IMG/VR virus record: IMGVR_UViG_3300044701_000569
Location: 124,001-188,000 of that record
Reading direction: 5' to 3' (one strand)
DNA: 64,000 bases
The notes below the pieces were generated by a model, which was given only the letters and a program-made list of their open reading frames with translations, did not search any database and was not told the DNA's origin. This document shows positions 8,678-64,000 of this stretch, in pieces. Position numbers and translations under genes: made by a program. Position 1 is the stretch's first letter; the number at the start of each line of letters is the position of its first letter.

Positions 8678-8685
8678 GGATTACA

Positions 8686-38868: not shown

Positions 38869-39222
38869 ATGGACGAAAGATTAGAAAAAGCTCTTAAGTT
38901 TAGCAATTACATGGTTACGCTAAACAATCAAAAACGAGTCATTAAAGAAAAGTATTTTGAAGACCTCATGTACTTTAACAGTGGTTGCCAATTTACTGTT
39001 ACGAAAGAATTAATTACGTTTGTTGGTCTGTTAATAGAACGAGGTAATGACTCTGATGTTGTACTAACTGACGATAACGACATACCTGCTAAGATATCAG
39101 ATCTAGGTTCTTTTTATGATGACATCCTTAATATTTACTTTACAGCATCAAATACGTATTACACAAAATACGAAGAACTTAAGAAAAACAGAAAAATAGA
39201 AACTCTAGTAAACCATGAATAA
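38869..39222 (+). CDS. hypothetical protein, possibly a tail-fibre-assembly-associated small domain
   Basis: ATG 38869 follows GGAG (the track TTG start lies within the RBS). G..F.V...L...LTDDND.P..I.DL..F pattern is reminiscent of DUF4376-type domains (weak). Confidence 0.5.
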   Translation: MDERLEKALKFSNYMVTLNNQKRVIKEKYFEDLMYFNSGCQFTVTKELITFVGLLIERGNDSDVVLTDDNDIPAKISDLGSFYDDILNIYFTASNTYYTKYEELKKNRKIETLVNHE

Positions 39223-40072
39223 TTCAAGAGGCGTTGTTTTATTTGCTAGAAACAATGGCAAACTTGATTATGTTAAACAGGCTGTATTTCTAGCAAAGAG
39301 AATTAAGAAATATCTAAATTTACCAACAACTGTAATAACAGATAGTGCTGATTATTTAGAAAAAGCATTTGATACAAATATTTTTGATAAAATTATTACA
39401 GTTGAATATTCTGAAACTAAAAATAATAGAGCTTATTTTGACGGTTCATTGTTTCACAAAACTGCTCCATTTAAAAATGACATGCGAGACGGTGTCTACA
39501 ATTGGTCACCTTACGATGAAACAATCTTAATGGATACTGATTATATCATATGCAATGATCTACTATTAAAATGTTTTGAGTCAAACAATGATTTAATGCT
39601 GTTTAAAGATTCATACGACCTAGCTCATTTTAGAAATCAAGATGAATTCAAACACATTAGTGACTTTACTATAGATTTTTATTGGGCTACAGTTGTGTTC
39701 TTCAGAAAAACAGATGAGAATGAAGTCTTTTTTGATCTTATACGCCATATTAAAAAAGAATGGAATCACTATAGACGTGTCTATCAAATAGATTCAGGAT
39801 TGTTTAGAAATGATTTTGCGTTTAGCATAGCTGTTCATATTATGAATGGATTTTCTAAAGGGTCTTTTGTAGCACCTTTGCCGGGAAAACATTACTATAC
39901 TATTGATAGAGATATTCTACAGAGTCTCGATGAAGACAGTATGTTATTTTTAGTAGAAAAGAAAGATCATTTAGGCGAATATACACTAATAAGAACTGAA
40001 AAACAAAATATTCACGTTATGAATAAGTTTAGTTTGGAACGAGTAATTGATGAGGAGATGTCTAATGGATAA
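39215..40072 (+). CDS. GT-A fold glycosyltransferase (GT8-like), paralog of 40065
   Basis: GVVLFA, SPYDETILMDTDY (DxD), YWATVVFFRK, RNDFAFSIA, H.MNK. Confidence 0.7.
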   Translation: MNNSRGVVLFARNNGKLDYVKQAVFLAKRIKKYLNLPTTVITDSADYLEKAFDTNIFDKIITVEYSETKNNRAYFDGSLFHKTAPFKNDMRDGVYNWSPYDETILMDTDYIICNDLLLKCFESNNDLMLFKDSYDLAHFRNQDEFKHISDFTIDFYWATVVFFRKTDENEVFFDLIRHIKKEWNHYRRVYQIDSGLFRNDFAFSIAVHIMNGFSKGSFVAPLPGKHYYTIDRDILQSLDEDSMLFLVEKKDHLGEYTLIRTEKQNIHVMNKFSLERVIDEEMSNG

Positions 40073-40910
40073 GAGTAGAGGCATCTTAGTATTAGCTCAA
40101 AATTCTACAGTAGCAAATTATGTTGAACAGGCTGCACTTTTAGCTATGAGCCTTAAAGTTACAAACCCTAGCACACTTATAAGTGTAGTTACTAATGATG
40201 AAGTTCCTACAGAATATGTAAAACTGTTTGATAAGATTATTCCTATACCGTTTGAAGATGATGCAGACGCAACAGAATGGAAGATTGAAAATAGATGGAA
40301 GCTATATCACGCAACACCTTATGATCAAACAATGGTATTGGATACTGATATGCTGATCCTACAGGATATATCAAGTTGGTGGAAGTTTTTAGAAAATTAC
40401 AAATTATATTTTACAACTAAAGTTTTTACTTATAGGGGCGAAGAAGTTACTAACGACTTTTATAGAAAAACTTTTACATCTAACAATCTTCCTAATCTAT
40501 ATAGCGGACTTCATTATTTCGAAAAGAGTAAACTAGCACTAGAGTTTTATACTTGGCTTGAACTTGTTATGCAGAACTGGGAATTGTTCTACGGATTGTA
40601 TGCTAAAGAAAATTATCCTGGTAGATGCAGTGTAGATGTTAGTGCAGCAATCGTAGCTAAAATTCTTGATTGTGACTCTGAAATTACAAACAATTATGCA
40701 GAATTTCCTACTTTTACTCATATGAAACCTCATATACAGAATTGGATTAGACCTAATGAAAAATGGCAAAACTGTGTTGGAGTTTACATTAATAGAAATT
40801 GTGAAATTAAAATAGGAAATTTTTCTCAGTTAGGTATCTTACATTATACAGAAAAAGATTTTGTAACACCTGAATTAATTGAACGCTATAGGAATTACCT
40901 ACATGTCTAA
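40065..40910 (+). CDS. GT-A fold glycosyltransferase (GT8-like), paralog of 39215
   Basis: GILVLA, KIENRWKLYHATPYDQTMVLDTDM (DxD), FTHMKP, LHYTEK. ATG 40065 after GAGGAG preferred. Confidence 0.72.
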   Translation: MDKSRGILVLAQNSTVANYVEQAALLAMSLKVTNPSTLISVVTNDEVPTEYVKLFDKIIPIPFEDDADATEWKIENRWKLYHATPYDQTMVLDTDMLILQDISSWWKFLENYKLYFTTKVFTYRGEEVTNDFYRKTFTSNNLPNLYSGLHYFEKSKLALEFYTWLELVMQNWELFYGLYAKENYPGRCSVDVSAAIVAKILDCDSEITNNYAEFPTFTHMKPHIQNWIRPNEKWQNCVGVYINRNCEIKIGNFSQLGILHYTEKDFVTPELIERYRNYLHV

Positions 40911-42288
40911 TTTTGCCGATTTTTTAAAAACACTAAACATTGAAGTAGATGTTGTAGCCAATTCTTTTGTCTATTATGATCCTACAAACGGAAAAATAGA
41001 AAAAATAGGTAACAAATATGTCAAAGACGATTCGTTATCAATACTAGAAGTTCATCACAGCACTGTAACTGATATTATAAATGGTACTAAGAGTCCTGAT
41101 GATTTTATTGTAGAGTACGATGTAGCTTTAAAACAGTTAGCTCTAAAAGAGAAGACATACGAAGATAACAATTCTAAAATAGATACTAGCATGCATCGCT
41201 TGCCTGTAGTAAGAACAGTTTCAGATGAAGCAGGCGACAGAAGTTCTTTAATTTTTAACGGCATCTACGACGGTGTTGAAGTTTTTATGTGGATTAGCGG
41301 AACTAGATTTACAAAAGGTATGCTAGTTTGGTATAAGAATACTGTTTACAAACTGTTAGAAGATATCGAATTAGAAGAGTTTGACGAATCAAAGGCAGAC
41401 GTATTTGTAACTGATGTAGTTGTATCTAATATAAAAAGCATTAATCATTTTGTTGAATACAAAGTCATGTTTAAATCTATTTTTGAAGGTGTACACGTAG
41501 ATGTATGGTATAGAGACCTAGAACATTTACCAGGGCAGCATGTTTGGATTTACAACAATGTTTATAGAATTAGAGAACATCAATCAGCTGATACTTCTTT
41601 TAATTTAGAAAATGCAGAACTTGTTCTAAGCAATGTTTTGCTGTATGGAGATATTAACAAATCTTTAACATTTGTTTCTGTGCTTTCCCCAGGAGATAAA
41701 ATTTTAGATAATAACAGGCTGTATCTTTGCTTAGATGAAAAGCTAAACGCAAAGATGCAAGAAAAGTCAATTGTTTTTTATACTTCAAAATATCAAGGAC
41801 TGTTATATGACGAAGAATTAAAAACTCTTACAAAATTTTCCTTTACTGAAAAGCATAATAAACTTCTAGCAGACAATGAAAAAATAAAAGATACTATTGA
41901 GTTGCTTGATAATAGCACTATTGAAGATGGCGCAAAGGTATTAATTGGCAAAAATTTGTACCTAGCTACTAGATTAGAAGTACGAGATATTGATGTAAAT
42001 GTTGTTCAAAATAATTTATTAGGTTGCTGGGAAATTTACCTAGGTAAGAAGACCAAAAGAAGTCTTCAAAAAATTAGTTATGTAGGACAAGACACATTGT
42101 ATTTCAGTGTTACATCTAAGTACGATCCTAATATACTTTATAGAACAATGGAATTTTCTTTAAGCAAACTGTTAAACGATGTTTCACAAATTTATCCCTA
42201 TCAAAATGATTGGGAACGAACTAGAGAAGATGTAAGTGTATACACTTCTAAGTTTTTTGATACCTACTCTCATGAGGTACTAGAATGA
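40903..42288 (+). CDS. hypothetical protein with degenerate CBM5/12-like repeats
   Basis: WISGTRFTKGMLVWYKNTVYKL and WYRDLEHLPGQHVWIYNNVYRI repeats; ATG 40903 overlaps the upstream stop. Confidence 0.6.
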   Translation: MSNFADFLKTLNIEVDVVANSFVYYDPTNGKIEKIGNKYVKDDSLSILEVHHSTVTDIINGTKSPDDFIVEYDVALKQLALKEKTYEDNNSKIDTSMHRLPVVRTVSDEAGDRSSLIFNGIYDGVEVFMWISGTRFTKGMLVWYKNTVYKLLEDIELEEFDESKADVFVTDVVVSNIKSINHFVEYKVMFKSIFEGVHVDVWYRDLEHLPGQHVWIYNNVYRIREHQSADTSFNLENAELVLSNVLLYGDINKSLTFVSVLSPGDKILDNNRLYLCLDEKLNAKMQEKSIVFYTSKYQGLLYDEELKTLTKFSFTEKHNKLLADNEKIKDTIELLDNSTIEDGAKVLIGKNLYLATRLEVRDIDVNVVQNNLLGCWEIYLGKKTKRSLQKISYVGQDTLYFSVTSKYDPNILYRTMEFSLSKLLNDVSQIYPYQNDWERTREDVSVYTSKFFDTYSHEVLE

Positions 42289-43208
42289 GCCAAAAAATTA
42301 AAGTTGTTGATTATGACATCATATACCTATCCTATGATGAACCAAATGCCGAAAAAAATTATGCAGATTTGTGTAAAAAGATACCGTGGGCAAAACGTGT
42401 TCACGGTGTTAAAGGATCCGATGCAGCACACAAAGCCTGTGCTCGTCTAAGCGAAACTGATAGGTTCATCACAGTTGACGGTGACAATGTTGTTAGAGAA
42501 GAATTTTTAAATCAAGAAATTGATTTTGTTGAACACACAGATCTTACAAATTGTGTAATCAGTTGGAGCGGCCGCAATGCTATCAACGGGTTAATGTATG
42601 GTAACGGTGGATTAAAATGTTGGCCTAAAGATTTTGTTCTCAATATGAAAACACATGAAGCAGCGGATCCAACAAACAAACACGCACAGGTTGACTTTTG
42701 CTGGGATGTGCAGTATATTCAAATGAACAGTTGTTATTCAGATGTATACAACAATGCTACGCCTGCACAGGCTTGGAGAGCAGGTTTTAGAGAAGGAGTT
42801 AAACTAGCTCTTGATAGAGGAGTAAAACCTTCAAAGGAAGACTTTCTAAAAAATCATTGGCGTTGTTTGCATTGGCTTTATATTTGGACAATGGTCGGAA
42901 CTGATATTGAAAATGGTAAATGGGCAATACTAGGGGCTAGAGAGGGTCTTTATAAAACTATGCTTACTGAATGGGACTATGTAAACGTTCGTGATTTTGA
43001 ATACCTTAATGATCTTTGGGCTAAAGAATTTGAAGCAATGCAAGATTCTGACATTGATTCTAGAACTACATTTCTTGGACAAGAACTTAGTGAAAAACTA
43101 AGCATTCCTATAGGTGAAGTACTAACATCGGATCAAAGTAAATTTTTTAAAACAGTTTACGAGCATCCTGCTAGAACTGATCACCAAAGGTTTATTGAGC
43201 GCCTATGA
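42285..43208 (+). CDS. glycosyltransferase-like protein (GT-A, DGD motif), paralog of 56199
   Basis: YDIIYLSYDEPNAE..Y..L......KRVHGVKGSDAAHK.CA...TDRFITVDGDN, LMYGNGGLK, AWRAGFRE.VKL. Confidence 0.62.
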   Translation: MSQKIKVVDYDIIYLSYDEPNAEKNYADLCKKIPWAKRVHGVKGSDAAHKACARLSETDRFITVDGDNVVREEFLNQEIDFVEHTDLTNCVISWSGRNAINGLMYGNGGLKCWPKDFVLNMKTHEAADPTNKHAQVDFCWDVQYIQMNSCYSDVYNNATPAQAWRAGFREGVKLALDRGVKPSKEDFLKNHWRCLHWLYIWTMVGTDIENGKWAILGAREGLYKTMLTEWDYVNVRDFEYLNDLWAKEFEAMQDSDIDSRTTFLGQELSEKLSIPIGEVLTSDQSKFFKTVYEHPARTDHQRFIERL

Positions 43209-44599
43209 GCAAAAGCTATTACAATATTAATGCAGAAAATATTAGAGAAGAACTAGATAAAGTAAGTTGTTCTATGTGTCTTGCTAAATGGACACAAGTT
43301 ACTATGCATTTGCATAACGGACACACACATAGCTGTCATCATCCTGTTCCCCATAAGATTCCTCTAGAAGAACTACTAGAAAGTCCCCACGCACTACATA
43401 ATACACGTTTTAAAATTGAGCAGAGAGAAAAAATGCTTAAAGGTGAACGACCTAAAGAGTGCGACTACTGTTGGAATATAGAAGATTTAGGCAAAGACTA
43501 TCTCAGCGACAGACATTTTAAAAGCGGAGAATATTGGAGTTCAGAATACAAAGATGAAATTCTAAAAGACCCACTACGCAAGGATTTTCTTCCTACATAC
43601 CTAGAAGTTAGTTTTTCAAATGTTTGCAATTTTAGCTGCATGTATTGCAGTCCGCAGATTAGTTCAAAGTGGGTTGACGATGTTAAAAGAAATGGTCCTT
43701 ATGATCTAGGTGATTTTAAACATGCTGATTTAAGTTATTTAGATCAAAAAGGTTTAACTCCTATACCTGAAAGGGAAGACAATCCTTATATTGACGCATT
43801 TTGGGAAATATGGCCTGAGTTATATCAAAAACTTAGAGTGTTTAGAATTACTGGTGGAGAACCTTTACTAAGCAAACATACTTGGAGAATTCTAGAGTAT
43901 GTTCAAGCTAATCCTAATCCTAACATTGAAATAATTATCAATAGTAATTTGTGTGTGCAAGATAATTTTATTGATAGATTAATAAAAATAGGTAATGATC
44001 TTATTACTAATTCTAAGGTAAAAAGATTTGAAATCTACACCAGTGTTGAGAGTGAAGGACGCCAAGCTGAATATATACGTCCAGGATTAGATTACGACAA
44101 ATTTATAAACAATCTAATACGTGTGACTACTGAGATGCCAATGATTAAATGGCGTTCAAAAGTAGTAATTATGGCAACATATAATCTGTTGAGTATACCT
44201 AGATTTAGAAAACTACTTGAATGGTTATTAGAGTACAGAAAAACTCATTCAAACCCTCAATGGAAAAACATTTGGATTGATATTAGTTATCTTCGTTATC
44301 CTAGTTGGCAAACGGTTAGTCTAGCTGACGAAAGTATGCTAAAGATTATAGAATCTGATCTTGAATTTTTAAAAGCAAACGATCAAAATATTGTAGGTTG
44401 GCACGGATTTCAAGATACAGAAATTGAAAAGTTTGCTAGAATGTATAAGTATGCTGTTGAGTCAAGACAGAAGCTAAATCCTATAGAAAAAGAACGTTTT
44501 TACAATTTCTTTAACCAGCATGATCAACGCAAGGGTTTTAATTTTGTAGAGGTGTTTCCTGAGTTGGAAGAATTTTATAATGACTGTAGATCGAAGTAA
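43205..44599 (+). CDS. radical SAM enzyme with an N-terminal Cys/His-rich twitch-like domain
   Basis: CNFSCMYC (CxxxCxxC), ITGGEPLL, INSNL; N-terminal CLAKW...HSCHHP...CDYCW. Confidence 0.92.
   Translation: MSKSYYNINAENIREELDKVSCSMCLAKWTQVTMHLHNGHTHSCHHPVPHKIPLEELLESPHALHNTRFKIEQREKMLKGERPKECDYCWNIEDLGKDYLSDRHFKSGEYWSSEYKDEILKDPLRKDFLPTYLEVSFSNVCNFSCMYCSPQISSKWVDDVKRNGPYDLGDFKHADLSYLDQKGLTPIPEREDNPYIDAFWEIWPELYQKLRVFRITGGEPLLSKHTWRILEYVQANPNPNIEIIINSNLCVQDNFIDRLIKIGNDLITNSKVKRFEIYTSVESEGRQAEYIRPGLDYDKFINNLIRVTTEMPMIKWRSKVVIMATYNLLSIPRFRKLLEWLLEYRKTHSNPQWKNIWIDISYLRYPSWQTVSLADESMLKIIESDLEFLKANDQNIVGWHGFQDTEIEKFARMYKYAVESRQKLNPIEKERFYNFFNQHDQRKGFNFVEVFPELEEFYNDCRSK
43779..43807 (+). repeat. 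29-nt exact direct repeat, copy 1 (copy 2 at 45148-45176)
   Basis: acaatccttatattgacgcattttgggaa occurs identically in both adjacent rSAM paralogs (encodes NPYIDAFWE). Confidence 0.85.
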
Positions 44600-45917
44600 A
44601 CTTTCAGAATACCATTTAATACATCTAAAGAAAAGTGACGAGATTTCGTCTACTTTCTGTTCTGCTAAATGGCATATGGTTACCCTGCATCTTGCACAGG
44701 GAGAAACTCATAGTTGTTACCATCCGTGGACACACAAAGTTCCCCTAGAAGAATTAAAAAATAATCCAGGTGCAATACATAATACACTCTTTAAAAAGAG
44801 TCAACGTAAACTTATGCTCAATGGAGAACGTCCTAAAGAGTGTGAATACTGCTGGCGTATGGAAGATTTAGGTAATATCAGTGATAGAATAATTCGTAAT
44901 GCTGAACCTTATGCTAAAAATGACCTAGACACTTTTAAAACATACACTGGCGACGAGGATGTCTACCCGCGCCATGTAGAAGTGAGCTTTAGTACAACCT
45001 GTAATCTTAAATGTTCTTACTGTAATCCTACAGTAAGTTCTAAGTGGCTTGAAGAAGTTAATCAATATGGCGGTTATAAAACAAGTACTGAGTTTAATGA
45101 CTATATCAAACCAGGTAAACCTCTACCATTTATATTAGATAGAGAACACAATCCTTATATTGACGCATTTTGGGAATGGCTACCGGACGCATACCCTCAT
45201 ATGCATGTCCTTCGTGTCACTGGCGGTGAGCCTCTTATGAGTAAACACACGTTTACTCTGCTGGATTACATTGCTGAAAATCCTAATCCTAAACTAGAAG
45301 TTGTAGTTAACTCTAATATGTGTGTGCCTGATAAGCTGATTGATCAAGCTATAGCAGCAGGTAAAAAGATAGTAGAACGTGTGGGTGTATTTAAGATGTT
45401 TGCAAGTCTTGACAGCGTTGGTGCTCAAGCCGAATATCAACGTTACGGTTTAAATTTTGAACAGTTTACAAAAAATGTAAGACGTTTCTTAGATGAAATC
45501 CCCAACAGCAAAGTTTCATTTACTTGCACCTTTAATGTATTCAGTGTTCCTAATGTAAAAGGCTTTATGGAATATATGTATAGTTTACATAAAGATTACG
45601 GTAAGAGAATAAACTTTGACACACCGTATTTGCGTTTTCCACCACATCAGTGTGTACAGATATTGCCAAATGAGTATGTAAAATATTTAGAGGCTGCTGA
45701 AGAATACATGATAGAAAAGTCATTTCCTCAGCTTACAATTGACAAGATTCAACGATTAAAAAGTTATATGACAAATAAAACTTTTACAGAAGAACAGTTA
45801 TCTACGTACAGAAAAGACTTTGTTATATTTGTAGACGAACACGATAAACGCAGAGGAACAAATTTCTTAGAGACTTATCCTGAGCTAAAAGAATTTTACG
45901 AGTTGTGTAATGAATGA
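44580..45917 (+). CDS. radical SAM enzyme with an N-terminal twitch-like domain; tandem paralog of 43205
   Basis: CNLKCSYC, VTGGEPLM, VNSNM; N-terminal CSAKW...HSCYHP...CEYCW. Confidence 0.92.
   Translation: MTVDRSKLSEYHLIHLKKSDEISSTFCSAKWHMVTLHLAQGETHSCYHPWTHKVPLEELKNNPGAIHNTLFKKSQRKLMLNGERPKECEYCWRMEDLGNISDRIIRNAEPYAKNDLDTFKTYTGDEDVYPRHVEVSFSTTCNLKCSYCNPTVSSKWLEEVNQYGGYKTSTEFNDYIKPGKPLPFILDREHNPYIDAFWEWLPDAYPHMHVLRVTGGEPLMSKHTFTLLDYIAENPNPKLEVVVNSNMCVPDKLIDQAIAAGKKIVERVGVFKMFASLDSVGAQAEYQRYGLNFEQFTKNVRRFLDEIPNSKVSFTCTFNVFSVPNVKGFMEYMYSLHKDYGKRINFDTPYLRFPPHQCVQILPNEYVKYLEAAEEYMIEKSFPQLTIDKIQRLKSYMTNKTFTEEQLSTYRKDFVIFVDEHDKRRGTNFLETYPELKEFYELCNE
45148..45176 (+). repeat. 29-nt exact direct repeat, copy 2
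   Basis: Identical to 43779-43807. Confidence 0.85.
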
Positions 45918-46770
45918 AATTTACATTAAATTTTCTAATGACTCGTATATTCAGATAGAATTATTAAAAAATAATTTTGTTGATGAATGGCTAGAAGTTT
46001 TTCAAAAAACTTCTAAATCAAATATTGGAACATTTAGAATAACTCCGCTAGTAGGATTAGAGTATTGCGATAATGAAATTAATAAATCGATAGATCGTCT
46101 TAATGAAATTTTTGCCAAACTTAACTCTTTAACAGGTGTATCTGCCAACATTCCGGTGTTAACAAGACAAAATATATCAAGAAAACTGTGCAATAAAATA
46201 CATCGTATTTTTACAACTCTTGTAAATTCTCAAGGTACAAAGTATAATTTTGGTTCGTCAATTCAACTTAACGGATTAGATTTAAAAAACCATAGAGATT
46301 TAATATATGAAATAAACGACAACATTCATTATGTTGAAAAAATTTTTCATGCTAACTCAGAATTTTTAAAAAATAATCAATCAAATTATGGATTGTTAAA
46401 TTTTAAAAACAAAAAAATAGAAAAAATTAGAAAAGATTATTTTAAATTTTTAACTAATGACACACAGTATGATGTTTTTATAAACGCAAATATTTGCGGC
46501 AAAAGCTATTTAAATTGTTTTTGGGACAATGATATACCAACAAATTATGATATAAAAAACGAAGAAAGTTATTGCGCTGATTTAGAATTTTTTATTCATA
46601 AGCCATCGTTTATTGACCTTATGCAGTATACTGAGTTTACAAACTGGTTACAGAAATATAGTCTTCCAGTTAATAATATAACATCTGGCAGAATGCCTGT
46701 AGGTAAAATAAAGGACAAACTGCTTAAAGATACAGACAGCATAGAAATAAAGAATATCGAATATGCTTAA
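45910..46770 (+). CDS. hypothetical protein, paralog of 53717
   Basis: Shares IH..F, N..IH..E, GK.....F..N, W, G..(P/E)VG.I spacing with 53717..54547; overlaps both neighbours by 8 nt. Confidence 0.65.
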   Translation: MNEIYIKFSNDSYIQIELLKNNFVDEWLEVFQKTSKSNIGTFRITPLVGLEYCDNEINKSIDRLNEIFAKLNSLTGVSANIPVLTRQNISRKLCNKIHRIFTTLVNSQGTKYNFGSSIQLNGLDLKNHRDLIYEINDNIHYVEKIFHANSEFLKNNQSNYGLLNFKNKKIEKIRKDYFKFLTNDTQYDVFINANICGKSYLNCFWDNDIPTNYDIKNEESYCADLEFFIHKPSFIDLMQYTEFTNWLQKYSLPVNNITSGRMPVGKIKDKLLKDTDSIEIKNIEYA

Positions 46771-50012: not shown

Positions 50013-50013
50013 T

Positions 50014-56197: not shown

Positions 56198-56198
56198 T

Positions 56199-56882: not shown

Positions 56883-57939
56883 CATACGCCAGGTTCATAT
56901 AGAACTAACAGACAAGTGCCAAGCACAATGTCCTATGTGTGCTAGAAATTTTCACGGGGGTCCTACTAGACCGTTTATAAAAAACGGTGACATTTCTATT
57001 GAACAGTTTAAGGAATGGTTTCCAAAAGCATTTTTATCTCAGCTAACAAACTTTTATAGTTGTGGGAATTATGGTGATCCTGCTTTTGCAAAAGATTGTT
57101 TAGAAATATATTCATATGTTCGAGAATGTAATCCAACTACACGTCTAGCTCTGCATACAAACGGAGGAATGAGGAATCCAGATTGGTGGAGTAAACTAGC
57201 AAAGGTTTTAGGATCTTCTGCTAACTCAGAAGTTGTCTTTGCTGTAGACGGATTTAAAGACAAGCACGAATTATATCGCAGAAATACAAATTTTGATAAA
57301 GTTATAGAAAACATGACAGCATTTATCGAAGCTGGCGGCCGAGCAAGGGTTGACAGTCTAGTATTTGCACACAACGAGCACGATGTAGAGGAACTAGAAC
57401 AATATTTAAATAATCTAGGTGTTGATAATGTAAATTTTGTTAGTACAACACGATTTTATGAAATGGATTCTTTTCCTGTACACGATTTAGACAATCGTCA
57501 TGTGTATGATTTAAAACCAGCACAGCGAATAGAATTTAAAAGAAATCCTAATAATGCTTTGGATCAATTAGTAGACCAACAGTTTAGAGATAAAGTAATT
57601 GGTGCTGCTGAAATATCACCTCTTTGTGTATCTGAACAGGGTATATACGTTGATCCTTACGGAAACATTCTGCCCTGCTGCTGGATAGGCAGTGATTATC
57701 TAGAAGAACCAATAGAAGAAATTTTGCCAATACATTATTTAAGAAATTTAAGTGTACAAAATACAAAGAACATGCTTAAAGATATAACAGTACCTAATTG
57801 TCAAGATAAGGTACTTTACAATTCGTCGGATGTTTTGTGGTCTAAACTGTCAGATTATTGGACAGGAGAAAACAAATGTATGACCTGTGTAAAGGTCTGT
57901 TCAAAGGCTTTGTATAATAGTAGAAAGAATAATGAATAA
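56866..57939 (+). CDS. radical SAM enzyme with a C-terminal twitch/SPASM-like domain
   Basis: HIELTDKCQAQCPMCAR; CGNYGDP in place of GGEP; HTNGG; C-terminal PLC..EQGIYVDPYG.ILPCCW...CMTCVKVC. GTG start after GAGGA. Confidence 0.9.
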   Translation: MQKISNIRQVHIELTDKCQAQCPMCARNFHGGPTRPFIKNGDISIEQFKEWFPKAFLSQLTNFYSCGNYGDPAFAKDCLEIYSYVRECNPTTRLALHTNGGMRNPDWWSKLAKVLGSSANSEVVFAVDGFKDKHELYRRNTNFDKVIENMTAFIEAGGRARVDSLVFAHNEHDVEELEQYLNNLGVDNVNFVSTTRFYEMDSFPVHDLDNRHVYDLKPAQRIEFKRNPNNALDQLVDQQFRDKVIGAAEISPLCVSEQGIYVDPYGNILPCCWIGSDYLEEPIEEILPIHYLRNLSVQNTKNMLKDITVPNCQDKVLYNSSDVLWSKLSDYWTGENKCMTCVKVCSKALYNSRKNNE

Positions 57940-58915
57940 TTTTCAAAATATACCCTGGCAAAACATAAAGCAGTTTGGCCAACAAACAATGCTACAGAAT
58001 CCTCTGTTCACTGTGTCTTGGATACTAGCAAGATTCTGTAATTACAACTGTTCTTATTGTTGGCCTTATGCTAGATCCAGCACTCCCGACCATCAAACTT
58101 TAGAAACTTATATTAAAACAATGGATAGTATCAAAGAGCAGGCTCGAAATAATGGATTTACAAACTTTCATTTTAGTTTTAGCGGAGGAGAACCGACTGC
58201 TTATAAACAGTTTGGAGACCTTATTGAACATTATGCAAGTGATGCATTACCTGACTATCAAAGTATACACATGACAACTAACTTATCGCCAGGTAGTAAG
58301 TGGTGGAGTAAATGGTTAGAAGCTACTAGTACATTACATAGAAAAAGTATTACAGCTAGTTTCCATGCTGAACATGCACAAGAACAGGAATTTGGAGATA
58401 AGTGTCTACAATTAATGAATGCCGGAGTATTTGTAACCATAAATCAAGTTATGGTTCCTTCGCAGTTTTATGATCTTTATGCTAGGTGCGAACGATTTGT
58501 AGAAAGAGGTATTAATGTTACTCTTAAACCGCAGAGTGATCCTACTGCTAGTTTTGTAGTTAACGGTTATACTGAAGATCAAATACATAAGATGCAGACA
58601 GGATTCCCACAGAAGTGGTTAGGTGAAGAGGTTTCACAAGTAGAACTTCAGGACTATGAGGGTAATAAATATTACATCGATCAAGCTGAACGGTTTAACG
58701 CATTTGGATTTAATAAATTTAAAGGTTGGCTTTGCAATGCAGGATACCAAGGTATTGTAATAAGAGAAAATGAAGTAAAAAGAAGTTATAGTTGTAAAGA
58801 TGTTCCGATTGGTACACTTGAAAACGGTTTTACAATTTTTGATAGCCCAACAGTATGTATTAGTGAATCGTGTGTTAGTAGCGCAGACAGCAAAATTCCT
58901 AAAAGGAGAAATTAA
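57932..58915 (+). CDS. radical SAM enzyme with a C-terminal Cys-rich auxiliary domain
   Basis: WILARFCNYNCSYC, FSGGEPT, MTTNLS; C-terminal GWLCNAG...SYSC...CISESCVSSAD. Confidence 0.9.
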   Translation: MNNFQNIPWQNIKQFGQQTMLQNPLFTVSWILARFCNYNCSYCWPYARSSTPDHQTLETYIKTMDSIKEQARNNGFTNFHFSFSGGEPTAYKQFGDLIEHYASDALPDYQSIHMTTNLSPGSKWWSKWLEATSTLHRKSITASFHAEHAQEQEFGDKCLQLMNAGVFVTINQVMVPSQFYDLYARCERFVERGINVTLKPQSDPTASFVVNGYTEDQIHKMQTGFPQKWLGEEVSQVELQDYEGNKYYIDQAERFNAFGFNKFKGWLCNAGYQGIVIRENEVKRSYSCKDVPIGTLENGFTIFDSPTVCISESCVSSADSKIPKRRN

Positions 58916-59460
58916 TGTTTAAAGAAGTAGCAATAGATTATGATTTTAGTATTTTTCTAAATGCTGATTACAATCAACACGAAGGTAGCTGTGTTAAACA
59001 CCAAGTATACGAACTAACAGACATTCATGAAAAGTTTGGAGGATTTCCTAACACTTTCTGTCTAGAAAATACTAAAATACATCAACTTTGGTGGACGGCT
59101 GATAATATAGACTTTAGCAGACTAGGCAGTCAACTTGGTATGGAGATTATTACAGTTAGTTCAATACTTCAACCTCCTGGCAATGTAATTCCGCTACACA
59201 GAGATACATTCTTTCAAATTAAAAAGAGATATCCTGACGATACTAGAAAAAAGGTTAGAGCTAATATGTATCTAGAAGATTGGAAAGTTGGACACATCAT
59301 TCAATATAGTAAAGATTCGGATTCTAACGAATGGGCCAACCATACACACTGGAAAGCTGGTCAAGGTTTATTATGGGATGAATCTATCCTTCATATTGGC
59401 GCAAACATAGGGTTACAAAACAAGTATACTCTACAGATATCCGGCTTTTTAAATGAATAA
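58915..59460 (+). CDS. 2OG-Fe(II) dioxygenase (AspH/LpxO-like cupin fold)
   Basis: QPPGNVIPLHRD (HxD), W..G.GLLWDESILHIGAN (distal His), KYTLQISG; AGGAG RBS. Confidence 0.75.
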   Translation: MFKEVAIDYDFSIFLNADYNQHEGSCVKHQVYELTDIHEKFGGFPNTFCLENTKIHQLWWTADNIDFSRLGSQLGMEIITVSSILQPPGNVIPLHRDTFFQIKKRYPDDTRKKVRANMYLEDWKVGHIIQYSKDSDSNEWANHTHWKAGQGLLWDESILHIGANIGLQNKYTLQISGFLNE

Positions 59461-60646
59461 AATAGTTCTATGGTACGATGATTTGCATAAAAGTAACTGT
59501 AGTTATGCGGATGCTGTCTACCCTACTAGAACTATTGTCAACAAATTAAACACTAATAAAATAGAATTTTCTATAAAACATCTAGGTGATCCTGTTGATC
59601 ACTCAGATACAAATGTTTACATTATTGAATTGTTGAATGTCTATATCGACTATGACATTTTCTCTTTAATTACAGAAGAAACAAAAGAGTTACTAAGACA
59701 AAATGTAAAATTAGTACTCTATTACCCAAGAGAAGGTCATGCGTTTGATAATTGGCTATTAAACATTTATAAAAATCTTAAAAAACATAATCTGTTAACA
59801 AATAAAATTTTCTTTGCATACGGTGATAACGAATTTGTAGAAAATTATTTAACATATATCAAAGAGCACAATATTGAAGATTTTTTAATCCCAATATTGT
59901 TTGATTTTTATAAAGGTGACTATTATGAAAACGCTAATTGTTTTAACAGATCCCTTAGTCACAAAAGAAAATTTGATTATTTGTTTTATAATGGAAAGAT
60001 AAGACCACATAGGCTATACGCAGTTGCTGAATTAAAGCATCGTCAAATTTTAAATAACGGTCTAGTAAGCCTAATTGGATCAAAACATACGATAGGTCAT
60101 TATGAAATAGATGAGTGTTTAAAAATACTAACAGAAAATAATTGCTGTCATTCTTATATAAAAGAATTTGCAAACAATTGGTCATCGTTAGTTCTTGATA
60201 CTGATAATAACAATTTTTCTCAAAACGCAGTTTACAATAATGCAATTAATCATTATTCCTCAACTTTTTTTAGTGTAATAAGTGAAACAGGGTTAGTATA
60301 TAGATTTATTACAGAAAAGATTTATAAACCTATGGCAAATTTACATCCGTTTATTCTTATAGGACCACCAAATATGTTAAGTTTATTAAGATCTAAAGGA
60401 TATAAGACATTTCCTGAAATGTTTAATGAATCATATGATAGTGAATTAGATCCTGTTAAACGAATTAACTTAGTTTTAGACGAGATAGAAAAATTTGCTA
60501 ATCTACCTACTGAAGAAAAACAAGAAAAATTTAAATCTATTAAAGACAAATTAGAATTTAATAAATCTCTATATATAAAAACTGCAAGGGATTCTAAAGC
60601 TAAAGATTTTATTGATATGTTTAAAACGATAGGTAATACAAAATGA
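59453..60646 (+). CDS. putative GT-B glycosyltransferase with a GT10-like TEK motif; paralog of 52494
   Basis: YLFYNGKIRPHR; FSVISETG..YRFITEKIYKPM..LHPFILIGPPN.L..L...GYKTF..MFNESYD. Confidence 0.5.
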   Translation: MNKIVLWYDDLHKSNCSYADAVYPTRTIVNKLNTNKIEFSIKHLGDPVDHSDTNVYIIELLNVYIDYDIFSLITEETKELLRQNVKLVLYYPREGHAFDNWLLNIYKNLKKHNLLTNKIFFAYGDNEFVENYLTYIKEHNIEDFLIPILFDFYKGDYYENANCFNRSLSHKRKFDYLFYNGKIRPHRLYAVAELKHRQILNNGLVSLIGSKHTIGHYEIDECLKILTENNCCHSYIKEFANNWSSLVLDTDNNNFSQNAVYNNAINHYSSTFFSVISETGLVYRFITEKIYKPMANLHPFILIGPPNMLSLLRSKGYKTFPEMFNESYDSELDPVKRINLVLDEIEKFANLPTEEKQEKFKSIKDKLEFNKSLYIKTARDSKAKDFIDMFKTIGNTK

Positions 60647-61251
60647 AAGTTGAGATTGAAGATGTTTTATTTTGGATGGATGCCATACGTAATAGCGAAG
60701 ATAGGTATCGAACTCTTGAAAGTTTTTGGAAAGGTCAAATTCGAAGTAAAGTATGGTTAATTAATAATTTAGATTTATTAGTTAATGCTTATCCTAAATC
60801 TATTGTAATTCATGGGGGATGGAATGGAGTTCTTGCTAGTTTACTTTTTAATAGTAAAATAATGAATATTTCTCATATTACCAGTGTTGATATTGATACA
60901 GTCTGCGAAGAAACTGCAAGAACAGTAAATAAACGTCAAGAAATTGAAGGTAGGTTTAAAGCAGTTACAGCTGATATGTGTACATATCAATATGAACAAG
61001 TACCAGACATTGTTATTAATACTAGTTGCGAGCATATAACACAGGAGCAATATGAGGAATGGTTAAATAATGTTCCAGAACAAACTCTTATTGTTTTACA
61101 AAGTAATAATTACTTTGAGTTAGAAGAACATATAAGATGTAGTATTGATGTAGAAGATTTTAAAAATATGTCTAAAATAAATGTTATGTACAGCGGTGAA
61201 TTTGAAACACCAAAGTATAAAAGATTCATGCTAATAGGAAAAAAGAAATGA
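60643..61251 (+). CDS. class I SAM-dependent methyltransferase
   Basis: IVIHGGWNG (motif I), TSVDID (motif II acidic), TADM, DIVINTSCEH (motif IV). Confidence 0.8.
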   Translation: MKVEIEDVLFWMDAIRNSEDRYRTLESFWKGQIRSKVWLINNLDLLVNAYPKSIVIHGGWNGVLASLLFNSKIMNISHITSVDIDTVCEETARTVNKRQEIEGRFKAVTADMCTYQYEQVPDIVINTSCEHITQEQYEEWLNNVPEQTLIVLQSNNYFELEEHIRCSIDVEDFKNMSKINVMYSGEFETPKYKRFMLIGKKK

Positions 61252-62660
61252 CTGATAAATTTTGGTGTAATTCAGGTAACAAGCAGTTAGAAAAATACCA
61301 ACAAGAAATTGAAACAAAGTCCGGTACACCAACCTTTTGCGTATTACCATGGATACATTTTGCTACACGCCCTAATGGAGATATGAGACTTTGCTGTTCA
61401 GCTAACGCTAGCGGCGCCGGCCAAGATCATGAAGTTGGGTTGGTAAAAATGGAACACGGTCGTCCTGCAAACTTTGGTCGTGAAACTCCTATGCAAGCAT
61501 GGAACAACGACTATATGAAAAGTGTTAGAACAACTATGATAAAAGGTGAAATACCATCAAGTTGTTCTAAGTGTTTTAGAGAAGAAGAAAAAGGCGTAGT
61601 TAGTAAACGTGTTTGGGAAACAGGCACTTGGATGCTAGATGGTATTGATCTTAAGGAATTAATTGAAAATACAGACGAAGATGGTATTGTACCAGAACGT
61701 TTGCAGTATCTTGATTTAAGACTAGGACACACTTGTAATTTAAAATGTGTTATGTGTAGTCCTCATGATAGTAGTAGATGGGTAGATGACCATAAAAAGA
61801 TTTATCCTTTATTTCAAAATGACTCGCTTAAAAAGCAAATGAGTTGGGACGCGGGATCTTTTAATAATTATTGGTATGAAAATCCTGTATTTTGGGAACA
61901 GATGTATGCACAGATACCCTATCTAAAGCAGGTTTACTTTGCAGGCGGCGAACCTTTAATGATAAAGGAACACAAGAATCTTTTAAAAGAAATTGTACGC
62001 CAAGGTTATGCTGATAAGATTTTAATTAGATACAATTCTAACGGATTATTACTAGACGAAGAAACATTAGAGTTATGGAAAAATTTTAAGAAAGTAAAAT
62101 TTGCTGTGAGTATTGATGATATTACTGACAGAAACTATTACATTAGATATCCGTCTGATTGGGATAGATTAGAAAAGAATATGCATATTCTTGATAATAC
62201 GCCTAGCAACGTACAAGTAAGTATTGCTACAGCTATTCAAATCCTAAACATAAAAACTCTACCTGAATTAGCAAAGTGGAAAATTACACAGAATTTTAAA
62301 AAGATAAATTTTGAAAATGTTTATGAAGGTATACAAGCCGGCGGCGGAATAGTAAACATGCACTTATTGTATATACCTACTTTTTTAAGTATACGATGCT
62401 TGCCTAAAGAGGACAAGCAAGAAGTAAGAAAAATATTTGAAGATTTTAGATTATGGCTTCTAGAAAACTATACACAAGATTCAGACTTTTGGAATGTAAA
62501 TCCGTATGGGTGGAAGCGTTGGCAGGCTGTTTTAGATTTTATGGACGGTGAAGATCATACACACGAACTACCGGCATTTAAAGAATACATACATAAACTA
62601 GATTCTATTAGAAACACAGATTTTAAAACTATTTTTCCGTTATTGAGTCACTTAGTATGA
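61248..62660 (+). CDS. N-terminal twitch-domain radical SAM enzyme
   Basis: CVLPWIHF..RPNG..RLCC...CSKCF.EE..G..SKR; DLRLGHTCNLKCVMC; FAGGEPL; YNSNG. Confidence 0.93.
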   Translation: MTDKFWCNSGNKQLEKYQQEIETKSGTPTFCVLPWIHFATRPNGDMRLCCSANASGAGQDHEVGLVKMEHGRPANFGRETPMQAWNNDYMKSVRTTMIKGEIPSSCSKCFREEEKGVVSKRVWETGTWMLDGIDLKELIENTDEDGIVPERLQYLDLRLGHTCNLKCVMCSPHDSSRWVDDHKKIYPLFQNDSLKKQMSWDAGSFNNYWYENPVFWEQMYAQIPYLKQVYFAGGEPLMIKEHKNLLKEIVRQGYADKILIRYNSNGLLLDEETLELWKNFKKVKFAVSIDDITDRNYYIRYPSDWDRLEKNMHILDNTPSNVQVSIATAIQILNIKTLPELAKWKITQNFKKINFENVYEGIQAGGGIVNMHLLYIPTFLSIRCLPKEDKQEVRKIFEDFRLWLLENYTQDSDFWNVNPYGWKRWQAVLDFMDGEDHTHELPAFKEYIHKLDSIRNTDFKTIFPLLSHLV

Positions 62661-63655
62661 AACAACTAGCAAGAGTTATTACTACACAAGATCCTACTCT
62701 TTTAGATGTGAGATTTTGGCCTACCGATATTTGTAACTTTAGTTGTAACTATTGTTTTCCTGGCAGTGTTCTTAACAAGTATCGTTATCCTAAAAATGTC
62801 AACACTGTAATAAAGAATTTTAGAATACTGTTTGATGCATATATGAAACTGCATAACAAGAAAAAGTTTAAGATAAACATAGTAGGGGGAGGTGAACCTA
62901 CATTATGGCCGCATCTCTCAGAGTTCTGTCAAGGCATTAAAGAAACACATCCAGTTGAAATACAATTGACTTCTAACGGCAGTAGAACTCTTAGATGGTG
63001 GGAAGAAAATAGTTTATATGTTGATAAAGTAGTATTAAGTTGTCATTACAAAGATGTTGACATTAATAATTTTATTCAAGTAGCTGATTATATTTTTGGA
63101 AGAGGTACAGACATAGGTGCTCTAATGCTTATGGATGCTACGGCTTGGGATACATGTGTTGAATTAATTGAACAAATGAGAAGCAGTAAACATCCTTGGA
63201 TTATACAAGCAAAAGAAGTTGTAGATGCTCCAGGATATGATATAAGAAACTATACAGCAGAACAGCTCAGTTATTTTAAACAACCTTTTAAACGTGTTCC
63301 GGATACTAATTGGATTATTAATAACATACATAGATTTAGAGTACACGAAAGTGTATCGCTTTATGATGATAATTCTGTAGAGCTAGCACTACCTAACTAT
63401 TACATAGTTAATAAATTAAATCAATGGAAGGGTTGGAATTGTAATGTGGCTCTTGAAAATCTAGTTATTACTTATGACGGTACAGTTACAGGTAGTTGTC
63501 AAGAACCTGTGTTTTCTAATTCTAATTTAAATATGTTTGCAGAAGATTTTGAAGAAAAATTTAGCGAAGAATCGCTAAGTTTAAAAACATTAATTTGTCC
63601 AAGAATGAATTGTAGCTGCCAACCAGATACGCACATTACAAAATGGAAGTCTTAG
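62657..63655 (+). CDS. radical SAM enzyme with a C-terminal Cys-rich auxiliary domain
   Basis: FWPTDICNFSCNYC, VGGGEPT, TSNGSR..WW; C-terminal GWNCNVA...YDG.V.GSC...CPRMNCSCQPD. Confidence 0.92.
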   Translation: MKQLARVITTQDPTLLDVRFWPTDICNFSCNYCFPGSVLNKYRYPKNVNTVIKNFRILFDAYMKLHNKKKFKINIVGGGEPTLWPHLSEFCQGIKETHPVEIQLTSNGSRTLRWWEENSLYVDKVVLSCHYKDVDINNFIQVADYIFGRGTDIGALMLMDATAWDTCVELIEQMRSSKHPWIIQAKEVVDAPGYDIRNYTAEQLSYFKQPFKRVPDTNWIINNIHRFRVHESVSLYDDNSVELALPNYYIVNKLNQWKGWNCNVALENLVITYDGTVTGSCQEPVFSNSNLNMFAEDFEEKFSEESLSLKTLICPRMNCSCQPDTHITKWKS

Positions 63656-64000
63656 TCAGCGGAATGTCTGCTGCACAAGTACACCAATTTCTATCACAAA
63701 TTATTTCTGATGCTGGAATACGAAAATCTCCTTTATAGATATTTCCTAAACTACCGCCAACCCTGCAAGTAGCTCGGTGTACTTCACCATCCCAGTTAAT
63801 CATTAGACTTTCAATACCTGCACTGCATTTCCAATCTTTAAATTTATTCATATGCAGTTTTATTATATCATTAGCATGATATAGATCTTTGTTGTCAACT
63901 ATGCAATTTTCTTTTGCTGTTGCGTTGTTTTCTAATAGATATTTTAAGTCATTAGGTTGATATCTCATGTCGTCGAACCAATCGTGATCACCTTCGGTCC
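63636..64000 (-). CDS. 3' end of a probable radical SAM gene (C-terminal Cys-rich auxiliary domain); 5' part lies beyond the window
   Basis: Frame stays open to the window edge (TEGDHDWFDDMRYQ...), so the track's Met is internal. NKFKDWKCSAGIESLMINWDGEVHRATC...CDRNWCTCAAD matches the auxiliary domain of 46763, 62657 and 49029. Confidence 0.8.
   Translation of the reverse strand, partial: TEGDHDWFDDMRYQPNDLKYLLENNATAKENCIVDNKDLYHANDIIKLHMNKFKDWKCSAGIESLMINWDGEVHRATCRVGGSLGNIYKGDFRIPASEIICDRNWCTCAADIPLTKTSIL

Follow-up and report, generated by a model that had tools for sequence, protein, structure and literature searches.

The window analysed here is a 64,000-nucleotide stretch of the 357-kb genome of an uncultured jumbo phage (IMG/VR record IMGVR_UViG_3300044701_000569, positions 124,001 to 188,000). 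It contains 25 plus-strand ORFs extending from 38857/38869 to 63655, directly behind a block of baseplate and tail-fibre genes. Stops and starts overlap or abut throughout most of the cluster, and no terminator was detected after the fibre genes. Eleven of the 25 genes encode radical SAM (rSAM) enzymes; each has a CxxxCxxC motif and scores above the gathering cut-off of Pfam PF04055 (30.4-50.4 bits against 29.5). A twelfth, r01, converges from the right edge of the window; it is cut by the edge but is seen whole, with a CNFDCGYC motif, on the parent contig. A thirteenth, of 443 aa, lies just beyond it. In all, about 27 genes make up the cluster. The original prediction of 25 co-oriented genes, with eleven complete rSAM enzymes, six glycosyltransferase (GT)-like proteins of three types, two SGNH proteins, a 2OG-Fe(II) oxygenase, a methyltransferase, four unknowns and a convergent twelfth rSAM gene, is confirmed as an observation, although the calls differ in how well they are supported (Table 1).

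Table 1. Genes of the cluster and the upstream tail-fibre block, with the basis of each assignment
Position	Strand	Gene	Assignment	Basis
15256..30651	+	u10	Giant 5131-aa virion protein heading the conserved tail-fibre block	Homologues upstream of the cluster in most related loci; RsoM2USA counterpart ORF361 is a virion protein by mass spectrometry (PMC8504454)
30659..38763	+	u11-u16	Tail-fibre / tail-collar-fibre-like block	PHROG tail fiber, tail collar fiber and tail protein hits for 31284-33338, 33340-35232 and 35275-36768
38869..39222	+	g01	Small conserved protein of unknown function; first gene of the module	No Pfam or PHROG hit; ATG at 38869 behind a GGAG
39215..40072	+	g02	GT8-like (glycogenin-like) GT-A glycosyltransferase	Paralogue of g03; deep profile hits only glycogenins, E 2.6e-4, across the DxD region
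40047..40910	+	g03	GT8-like GT-A glycosyltransferase	As g02; 126 viral relatives
40879..42288	+	g04	Unknown; most variable member of the conserved left block	No family hit; 24-63% identical to relatives, or replaced by ORFs of about 190 aa
42285..43208	+	g05	GT2-like GT-A glycosyltransferase (N-terminal half of fused homologues)	35% identical to g18
43205..44599	+	g06	rSAM with N-terminal twitch domain (family A)	PF04055; CNFSCMYC motif; 40% identical to g07; 43% identical to the RsoM2USA rSAM
44580..45917	+	g07	rSAM, NF033640 N_Twi_rSAM	337.5 bits (cut-off 170)
45910..46770	+	g08	Unknown; recurrent rSAM-companion family	No family hit; related to the ~270-aa ORF between r01 and r02 homologues in relatives
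46763..47719	+	g09	rSAM with C-terminal Cys-rich (twitch/SPASM-like) domain (family B)	PF04055; family profile closest to MoaA (2e-13) and viperin-like enzymes
47716..49032	+	g10	rSAM, NF033640	316 bits; Pfam SPASM at residues 9-78, ahead of the rSAM core
49014..50012	+	g11	rSAM, circularly permuted relative to family B	N terminus aligns with g09 C terminus, core with g09 N terminus; PF04055
50002..51297	+	g12	rSAM, family A	PF04055 and N-terminal SPASM hit; falls in a clade of 20 cellular sequences
51290..52504	+	g13	rSAM, NF033640	299.5 bits
52494..53720	+	g14	GT-B-type glycosyltransferase-like protein, paralogue of g22	C-terminal similarity to g22; aligns with the g22 family
53717..54547	+	g15	Unknown	No family hit
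54544..55374	+	g16	SGNH/GDSL-like (unconfirmed)	GDSFAD block; Lipase_GDSL E 0.094, below threshold
55367..56197	+	g17	SGNH/GDSL-like (unconfirmed), paralogue of g16	46% identical to g16; Lipase_GDSL E 0.022, below threshold
56199..56882	+	g18	GT2-like GT-A glycosyltransferase; first gene of the widely conserved right-hand core	Pfam Glycos_transf_2 in homologues; conserved in related loci
56866..57939	+	g19	rSAM; closest solved relative BlsE (cytosylglucuronate decarboxylase)	NCBIfam BlsE E 2.5e-10, 40 bits against a cut-off of 400; PDB 7vob E 7e-9
57932..58915	+	g20	rSAM, family B	PF04055; family profile as g09
58915..59460	+	g21	Small cupin / 2OG-Fe(II)-type oxygenase-like protein	hhalign to the r10/r11 family: probability 93.7%, E 1.9e-7, HxD...H motif aligned
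59453..60646	+	g22	Predicted GT-B fold glycosyltransferase (GT10 fucosyltransferase-like)	AlphaFold model pLDDT 87.7; Foldseek hits 7yro and 2nzw, E 1e-4, probability 1.0
60643..61251	+	g23	Methyltransferase-like (weak evidence); part of the conserved core	Methyltransf_25 E 0.0047; no PDB hit
61248..62660	+	g24	rSAM, NF033640	397.5 bits; more than 4000 homologues at E < 1e-10
62657..63655	+	g25	rSAM, family B	PF04055; 62 related viral loci
63636..64000	-	r01	C-terminal part of a convergent 296-aa family B rSAM	Complete on the parent contig

Glycosyltransferases and accessory enzymes

All three GT types, GT8-like (g02 and g03), GT2-like (g05 and g18) and GT-B/GT10-like (g14 and g22), received independent support. 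For the GT2-like pair, 56%-identical homologues hit Pfam Glycos_transf_2 (PF00535) over the DxD region. In the fused homologues of about 530 aa, however, the hits above the cut-off fall on the g18-like C-terminal half; the g05-like N-terminal half gave only a weak, sub-threshold hit in one of them. The GT2 assignment of g05 thus rests on its paralogy to g18. The 2OG-oxygenase call for g21 is supported by remote homology to a small HxD...H cupin family, whereas the SGNH and methyltransferase calls rest on motifs and sub-threshold hits. No predicted membrane protein occurs in the cluster.

The cluster continues outside the window with r02 (rSAM), r03 (a QueC-like PP-loop protein, by PHROG) and two AspH-like hydroxylases, r04 and r08. 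The former matches Cpz10 in the PDB (2e-15) and the latter hits Pfam Asp_Arg_Hydrox.

Radical SAM enzymes

Six of the rSAM enzymes in the window have the auxiliary-cluster twitch domain at the N terminus. The five that were tested (g07, g10, g13 and g24 in the window, and r02 just beyond it) score 299-397 bits against NCBIfam NF033640, a family in which no characterised member was found; membership therefore gives no function. In these five an N-terminal four-Cys domain precedes the CxxxCxxC core. The family A N-terminal domain aligns with the twitch domain of BtrN (E 0.0085), but the domain order is permuted in family A. The best solved relatives of g19 and of family B act on sugar nucleosides or nucleotides. 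However, it should be noted that the profile hits also include peptide maturases (SkfB, anSME and YydG) and a lipid enzyme (GDGT-MAS) at similar E-values. None of the rSAM enzymes is a member of the BtrN, NeoN or BlsE families.

Orthologues are 55-80% identical across phages, while paralogues are 31% identical or less, apart from the g06/g07 pair. The paralogues fall in separate clades of mixed viral and cellular sequences. This implies distinct, non-redundant steps.

Conservation of the locus

The order giant virion protein, tail fibres, g01-g05, variable rSAM/GT cassettes and g18 recurs in about 80 viral contigs. It is also found, with one rSAM gene, in the cultured Ralstonia phage RsoM2USA, in which the upstream block is virion-borne (PMC8504454). 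The g01 gene is present together with g02, g03 and g05 in 69 of 78 related loci. Lack of conservation next to tail genes had been named beforehand as grounds for rejecting a glycan pathway; adjacency to the tail-fibre genes is conserved in 63 of 67 informative related loci, so this test is passed. Four related loci have the GT block but no rSAM gene in the next ~10 kb, so the rSAM enzymes are accessory to whatever the GTs do.

Sugar-nucleotide genes are found in related viral clusters. These include UDP-glucose/GDP-mannose 6-dehydrogenases (UDPG_MGDP_dh, E 1e-17; 11 of 64 and 15 of 80 loci) and NDP-sugar epimerase/dehydratases (E 1e-32 to 1e-41). The window itself encodes no recognisable sugar-nucleotide synthesis enzyme. 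In Bdellovibrionota chromosomes the same rSAM families sit beside GT2 genes (E 1e-12 to 1e-19), a QueC-like protein and 2OG oxygenases.

Comparison with other phages and enzymes

The original prediction held that phage rSAM genes normally come singly and that no characterised phage pathway with this many paralogues is known. The first premise is wrong and the claim of uniqueness is overstated, as multi-rSAM phages and regions of tail-fibre, GT and rSAM genes were described genomically in 2010, 2017 and 2020, although without a demonstrated function. Campylobacter phages CP220 and CPt10 have 11-12 rSAM genes (PMC2853527) and the T4-like marine genome TARA_ERS488813_N000010 has 12 (PMC5332604); these are partly clustered and of unknown function. 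Those reports do not link the rSAM genes to GTs and tail fibres. No close homology was detected; a search of cultured phages with r02 found only 22-25% identity, in Vibrio and Ralstonia phages.

A similar layout is the "host recognition cluster" of pelagimyophages and cyanomyophages (Zaragoza-Solas et al. 2020, PMC7029224). There, a large hypervariable region follows the giant structural protein and tail fibres, and holds several GTs, with GT8 prominent, and gain or loss of rSAM cassettes; AspH-like hydroxylases occur in the same phages. That description is purely genomic and concerns T4-like phages, whereas the carrier here is a Rak2/RsoM2USA-like jumbo phage. The invariant g01-g05/g18 block, the NF033640 identity of the rSAM enzymes and the link to Bdellovibrionota are defined here.

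In mycobacteriophages (Freeman et al. 2023, PMC10527164), and in the fibrils of giant viruses, virus-encoded GTs with sugar-tailoring enzymes reportedly lie beside structural genes and decorate virion surface proteins. Those systems are not known to use rSAM enzymes, and in the present clade a virion glycan is hypothetical.

Alternative functions

The same enzymes might instead act on the LPS or capsule precursors of the host during infection, blocking superinfection or altering receptors. Similar regions in pelagimyophages have been read as host O-antigen modification (PMC7029224), and GT8, GT2 and GT10-like families are typical of LPS and O-antigen synthesis. The Bdellovibrionota homologues are chromosomal and lie beside GT2 genes and, in some loci, an MFS transporter; in the one locus inspected they are flanked by what look like housekeeping genes (GcvP- and RlmN-like, judged by eye from their N-termini). 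However, the cluster has no flippase, polymerase, ligase or lipid-carrier transferase, and it is embedded in the late structural module. RsoM2USA, the only cultured carrier, is reported to be lytic (PMC8504454), and for a lytic phage surface conversion would bring less obvious benefit; this need not hold for the uncultured carriers, whose lifestyle is unknown. This explanation is considered unlikely, although it ranks above the other alternatives.

Protein-directed radical chemistry is less likely still. In this view the rSAM enzymes would cross-link, epimerise or oxidise residues of the tail-fibre or giant protein, the AspH-like enzymes would hydroxylate Asp/Asn, and the GTs would glycosylate the modified residues or act separately. 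SPASM/twitch rSAM enzymes are mostly peptide or protein maturases, and CteB appears among the profile hits along with SkfB, anSME and YydG; AspH-family hydroxylases classically act on proteins, and adjacency to the fibre genes is conserved. Against this, there is no precursor-peptide ORF and no intergenic room for one, and the fibre proteins contain almost no Cys (0-0.5%), which argues against thioether links. The nucleoside- or nucleotide-acting best hits for g19 and family B also count against it, and the UDP-sugar dehydrogenase and epimerase genes in orthologous clusters point to sugars.

DNA hypermodification, in which a sugar- or amide-bearing base would protect the genome from restriction, is improbable. 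A QueC-like protein is present, family B resembles the nucleotide-acting MoaA, viperin and QueE enzymes, and Campylobacter phages with 11-12 rSAM genes are on record (PMC2853527). GTs and rSAM enzymes are both used in phage base modifications. However, Pfam scans found no FolE, QueD, DpdA, hydroxymethylase or nucleotide kinase among the genes scanned in or beside the cluster. The location is the structural rather than the replication module, the same families occur in Bdellovibrionota chromosomes with GT2 genes and a transporter, and UDP-sugar dehydrogenases are more typical of glycan pathways.

A diffusible glycosylated small molecule, such as an aminoglycoside-like or nucleoside-like metabolite, is the least likely product: the closest characterised relatives come from antibiotic pathways (BlsE of blasticidin S, Cpz10 of caprazamycin, PMC9814697, and the BtrN twitch domain) and an MFS transporter sits beside the Bdellovibrionota operon, but the phage cluster has no exporter, scaffold-forming enzyme or resistance gene, and its linkage to tail-fibre genes is tight and conserved.

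Predicted function

The original prediction was of a multi-step pathway that builds a glycan and tailors it by oxidation, epimerisation, deoxygenation, acylation, methylation and hydroxylation, most likely on virion proteins or else on the host surface. This interpretation is partly supported. The link to sugars is supported by context: the three GT types, the sugar-nucleotide enzymes of related viral clusters, the GT2 neighbours in Bdellovibrionota and the similarity of g19 to BlsE. Gene content, family and fold assignments, conserved synteny and the presence of sugar-nucleotide enzymes in orthologous clusters are established by the analysis, whereas every reaction, the substrate and the target (virion, host surface or DNA) are inferred.

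The best explanation is a soluble, cytoplasmic pathway which tailors nucleotide-sugars and transfers them onto a target, and which is physically and evolutionarily tied to the tail-fibre genes of a Rak2/RsoM2USA-like jumbo myophage. In this view the invariant part, g01-g05 plus g18, would supply two GT8-like and two GT2-like transferases. A variable set of cassettes would supply enzymes that remodel the sugar donors or the growing glycan: twitch-domain rSAM enzymes, GT-B transferases, SGNH-like proteins, small 2OG/cupin oxygenases, a methyltransferase-like protein and, just outside the window, the QueC-like PP-loop ATPase and AspH-like hydroxylases. Uronic-acid chemistry is a plausible theme; relatives carry UDP-sugar 6-dehydrogenases, g19 resembles a decarboxylase of a glucuronate moiety, and a PP-loop enzyme could amidate a carboxylate.

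Action on sugars or glycans is considered more likely than not. The full reading, including a virion target, remains tentative; genomic adjacency to tail fibres does not prove such a target. The most likely target is nevertheless the distal virion proteins of the phage itself, meaning the tail fibres or the giant fibre protein, which would receive an unusual sugar coat. The effect would be to change recognition, stability or evasion of host defences.

Gene content and genomic context

The cluster lies on IMG/VR contig UViG_3300044701_000569 (357,559 bp). It comprises 25 plus-strand ORFs (g01-g25) with overlapping or abutting boundaries. Eleven of these carry the CxxxCxxC motif and score 30.4-50.4 bits on the Pfam radical SAM (rSAM) profile PF04055, above the gathering cut-off of 29.5. 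The minus-strand ORF at the right edge of the window is the C terminus of a 296-aa rSAM (r01), and a 443-aa rSAM (r02) follows it outside the window; both have the motif, and the locus therefore has 13 rSAM genes. The cluster described in the original prediction is thus a real feature, while its interpretation as a glycan-tailoring pathway is only partly supported.

The upstream genes encode a baseplate hub with lysozyme, a baseplate wedge, a giant protein (u10) and several tail-fibre-like proteins (u11-u16 block). Two adjacent large proteins in this region carry endolysin/lysozyme-type PHROG hits, and one is fused to a baseplate hub domain, which suggests a tail-associated apparatus for cell-wall degradation. 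The giant protein lies between the baseplate wedge and the tail fibres. It has almost no Cys (0.1%) and no tandem DNA repeats. The fibre proteins contain no collagen-like GXY runs. The baseplate wedge is 35-38% identical to those of Atu_ph07, SCTP-2, GAP32 and similar phages; the carrier is therefore a Rak2-like jumbo myophage and not a T4-like phage. No tRNAs or tandem repeats are present in the window. Promoter and terminator scans were at chance level, with no terminator between the fibre genes and g01. Megablast of the whole cluster against cultured phages gave no match.

Coordinates of selected features in the window and in related loci
Feature	Location	Strand	Description
Lysozyme-type pair	window 6935-11313		two adjacent large proteins
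u10	window 15256-30651		5131-aa ORF
Cluster (g01-g25)	window 38857/38869-63655	+	25 ORFs
g05	window 42285-43208	+	GT2-like
g08	window 45910-46770	+	unknown, next to rSAMs
g09	window 46763-47719	+	family B rSAM
g11	window 49014-50012	+	permuted rSAM
g18	window 56199-56882	+	GT2-like
Small cupins (family A11)	L003:18551-19655		parent contig, beyond the window
g08 family member	L010:11879-12688		related locus
Cold-shock/2OG fusion	L015:17380-18426		related locus
Remote family A relatives	L227, 161.5-166 kb		Vibrio phage K566

Radical SAM enzymes

The rSAM enzymes fall into three groups. Family A comprises g06, g07, g10, g12, g13 and g24, plus r02 outside the window. In these proteins the SPASM/twitch-type domain is N-terminal to the rSAM core, and four Cys residues (C17, C35, C81 and C84) are invariant. 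The five members scanned, which exclude the paralogues g06 and g12, match the NCBIfam family NF033640 (N_Twi_rSAM) above its cut-off of 170 bits: g07 scores 337.5, g10 316.1, g13 299.5, g24 397.5 and r02 326.5 bits. This is a named family, but no characterised member was found. An alignment of six paralogues (A1) was too divergent to seed a genome scan. Family B comprises g09, g20 and g25, plus r01; here the Cys-rich domain is C-terminal. The g11 protein is a circular permutation of this type: its first ~100 residues align with the C-terminal Cys-rich domain of g09, and its residues 130-324 align with the N-terminal core of g09. Both domain orders therefore coexist in one cluster. The third group is g19, which stands alone.

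Profile searches of the PDB identified the closest solved relatives. For family A these are GDGT-MAS, SkfB, anSME and MoaA, with the twitch domain of BtrN aligned to the N terminus. Only this domain aligns with BtrN (E 0.0085), and it is N-terminal here, so family A does not belong with the sugar-acting twitch rSAMs of the BtrN/NeoN type, in which the domain is C-terminal. The closest relative of g19 is BlsE, a decarboxylase of a glucuronate nucleoside, at 7e-9, five orders of magnitude better than the next hit. However, g19 scores only 40.3 bits on the BlsE equivalog (cytosylglucuronate decarboxylase, TIGR04466), against a cut-off of 400, and is not a member of that family. Family B is closest to MoaA (2e-13) and viperin-like enzymes. 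None of these hits reaches a family cut-off; they are leads about substrate class and not assignments.

Orthologues in other phages are 55-80% identical, whereas paralogues within the window are 31% identical or less, apart from the g06/g07 pair at 40%. In a tree, each paralogue sits in its own clade with both viral and cellular members. The copies are therefore old and presumably do different jobs.

Glycosyltransferase-like proteins and other genes

Pfam and PHROG scans of the non-rSAM genes gave essentially nothing. A 36-sequence profile (A12) of the g02/g03 family hits 19 glycogenin (GT8) sequences and nothing else, at E 2.6e-4 to 7e-4, across the DxD region but only over residues 3-124. 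Neither protein gives a Pfam hit, and a structure prediction of g02 from a two-sequence alignment reached a pLDDT of only 38. Likewise, g05 and g18 give no hit to Pfam Glycos_transf_2 (PF00535, GT2) themselves, but homologues 56% identical do, at 26.5-29.1 bits against a cut-off of 23.3, within the g18-like region. Homologues of these two genes are often fused into one ~530-aa protein. The g22 protein, a paralogue of g14, has a confident model (pLDDT 87.7, pTM 0.84) with a predicted GT-B fold. Its top Foldseek hits are all GT-B transferases, led by the fucosyltransferases 7yro and 2nzw at E about 1e-4; this resemblance does not in itself establish GT10 membership. PDB profile searches for g18 (A2), g23 (A3) and g22 (A6) gave no meaningful hit.

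The g21 protein belongs to the r10/r11 family of small (~185 aa) HxD...H cupins and is linked to the 2OG-Fe(II) oxygenases only through it. This family has two copies outside the window and occurs in two to six tandem copies beside the core in related loci. Both g16 and g17 have a clear SGNH block I (GDSFAD), but their Lipase_GDSL hits are below threshold (E 0.094 and 0.022) and cover the N terminus only. The g23 protein is only weakly methyltransferase-like. The g08 family, of ~270-290 aa, recurs between the convergent rSAMs r01 and r02 in many relatives, and may be a partner or substrate-handling protein.

Beyond the window, r03 is a QueC-like PP-loop protein with SGGADS and C-terminal CxxCxxC motifs; its own profile gave only E ~0.7 to tRNA thiolases. 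The r04 protein matches the beta-hydroxylase Cpz10 (7v4f) at 2e-15, and r08 is an Asp/Asn beta-hydroxylase family member (PF05118, 54.5 bits). Both belong to the 2OG-Fe(II)/AspH-like oxygenases. No protein of the locus has a predicted membrane segment.

Conservation in other phages

Two scans of viral contigs gave about 60 and 80 related loci. The right half of the cluster forms a conserved core in the order g18, g19, g20, (g21, g22), g23, g24, g25, r01, r02, r03, r04. In 15 of 64 related loci, a fusion of a cold-shock DNA/RNA-binding domain with a 2OG-Fe(II) oxygenase domain lies just right of this core; it is not present in the window. The left half shows the order u10-u16, g01, g02, g03, g04, g05, variable cassettes, g18. 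The fibre block is present in 63 of 67 loci with enough upstream sequence, and g01, g02, g03 and g05 are present in 69 of 78 loci. The number of rSAMs in the next ~10 kb ranges from 0 to 6. The glycosyltransferase (GT) block next to the fibres is therefore the constant, and the rSAM cassettes are accessory and mobile. In the window, twelve genes (g06-g17) separate g05 from g18, as if the rSAM cassettes had been inserted between the two halves of the gene that is fused in many metagenomic relatives.

The cultured Ralstonia phage RsoM2USA has the minimal form: giant protein, fibre, g01, g02, g03, a short g04-like ORF, g05, one family A rSAM, g18 and g23, all annotated as hypothetical. Its giant protein (over 288 kDa) and neighbouring proteins were found in virions by mass spectrometry (PMC8504454). 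The cultured KVP40-like Vibrio phages K566 and K567 carry three adjacent remote relatives (24% identity) of the family A rSAMs among hypothetical genes, apparently not next to tail fibres.

Links to sugar metabolism and to Bdellovibrionota

Orthologous clusters in other viral contigs contain several types of sugar-related genes. These include UDP-glucose/GDP-mannose 6-dehydrogenase genes, often directly before g18, and NDP-sugar epimerase/dehydratase genes, together with further SGNH-like paralogues.

A scan of one genome per species found the family A pattern almost only in Bdellovibrionota, including chromosomal contigs of 2.5-3 Mb; the search pattern was narrow, and the taxonomic skew is provisional to that extent. 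There are up to a dozen paralogues per locus and several loci per chromosome. They occur in multi-rSAM clusters of the same families with GT2 genes, a QueC-like protein and 2OG oxygenases, and in some loci an MFS transporter. In the one locus inspected (L074), the flanking ORFs look like housekeeping genes (GcvP- and RlmN-like), judged by their N-termini alone.

Predicted pathway and target

The dehydrogenases, the BlsE-like g19 and a putative carboxylate-activating PP-loop enzyme together suggest uronic-acid chemistry. Three points favour virion proteins as the target: the conserved position inside the structural module, the absence of a detectable terminator after the fibre genes, and the lack of membrane components. 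None of these is proof. What the analysis shows is the gene content, the conserved linkage to structural genes and the sugar-nucleotide enzymes in orthologous clusters; the reactions, the substrates and the target, including any glycan on the virion dependent on the phage GTs, are inferred.

Host-surface modification is the published reading for similar regions in pelagimyophages (PMC7029224). Protein-directed radical chemistry, DNA hypermodification and a diffusible metabolite also remain possible. Three more specific pathways were rejected because their defining parts are missing. A RiPP cluster is contradicted by overlapping genes that leave no room for small precursor ORFs, by the lack of protease or transporter domains in Pfam scans of the cluster, and by the lack of predicted membrane segments. 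A canonical 7-deazaguanine (preQ0/ADG) pathway is represented only by the divergent QueC-like protein, with no Pfam hits to FolE, QueD or DpdA among the genes scanned (g01-g25 and r03-r12). A self-contained surface-polysaccharide export pathway was dismissed on the same grounds.

A more far-reaching reading is unlikely on present evidence, though it is compatible with it. In this view, rSAM enzymes with N-terminal twitch domains would tailor uronic-acid-derived nucleotide sugars into rare sugars, which GT8, GT2 and GT-B transferases would then install on the tail fibres of a widespread clade of environmental jumbo phages. The same toolkit would have been exchanged repeatedly with predatory Bdellovibrionota. 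If true, this would be the first radical-SAM-dependent glycan pathway of a virus, and it would give a function to NF033640.

Relation to earlier work and significance

Phages with 11-12 rSAM genes were reported in 2010 (PMC2853527) and 2017 (PMC5332604), and tail-fibre regions with GT8 genes and rSAM cassettes were described in 2020 (PMC7029224). Literature searches found no characterised Bdellovibrio or phage rSAM-GT pathway, and no paper that characterises any of these enzymes or links them to Bdellovibrionota. The cluster is thus an abundant and uncharacterised variant of a pattern which has already been noticed. One of its rSAMs (g24) has more than 4000 homologues at E < 1e-10 in public metagenomes. 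The module is conserved next to the host-recognition apparatus of a large group of uncultured jumbo phages, and its central enzymes belong to an rSAM family with no known reaction. The one-rSAM version in the cultured phage RsoM2USA makes the question directly testable. If the module makes a virion glycan, it would add radical chemistry to phage glycobiology, and it would bear on how phages tune adsorption and evade defences. The sharing with Bdellovibrionota points to gene exchange between two kinds of bacterial predator.
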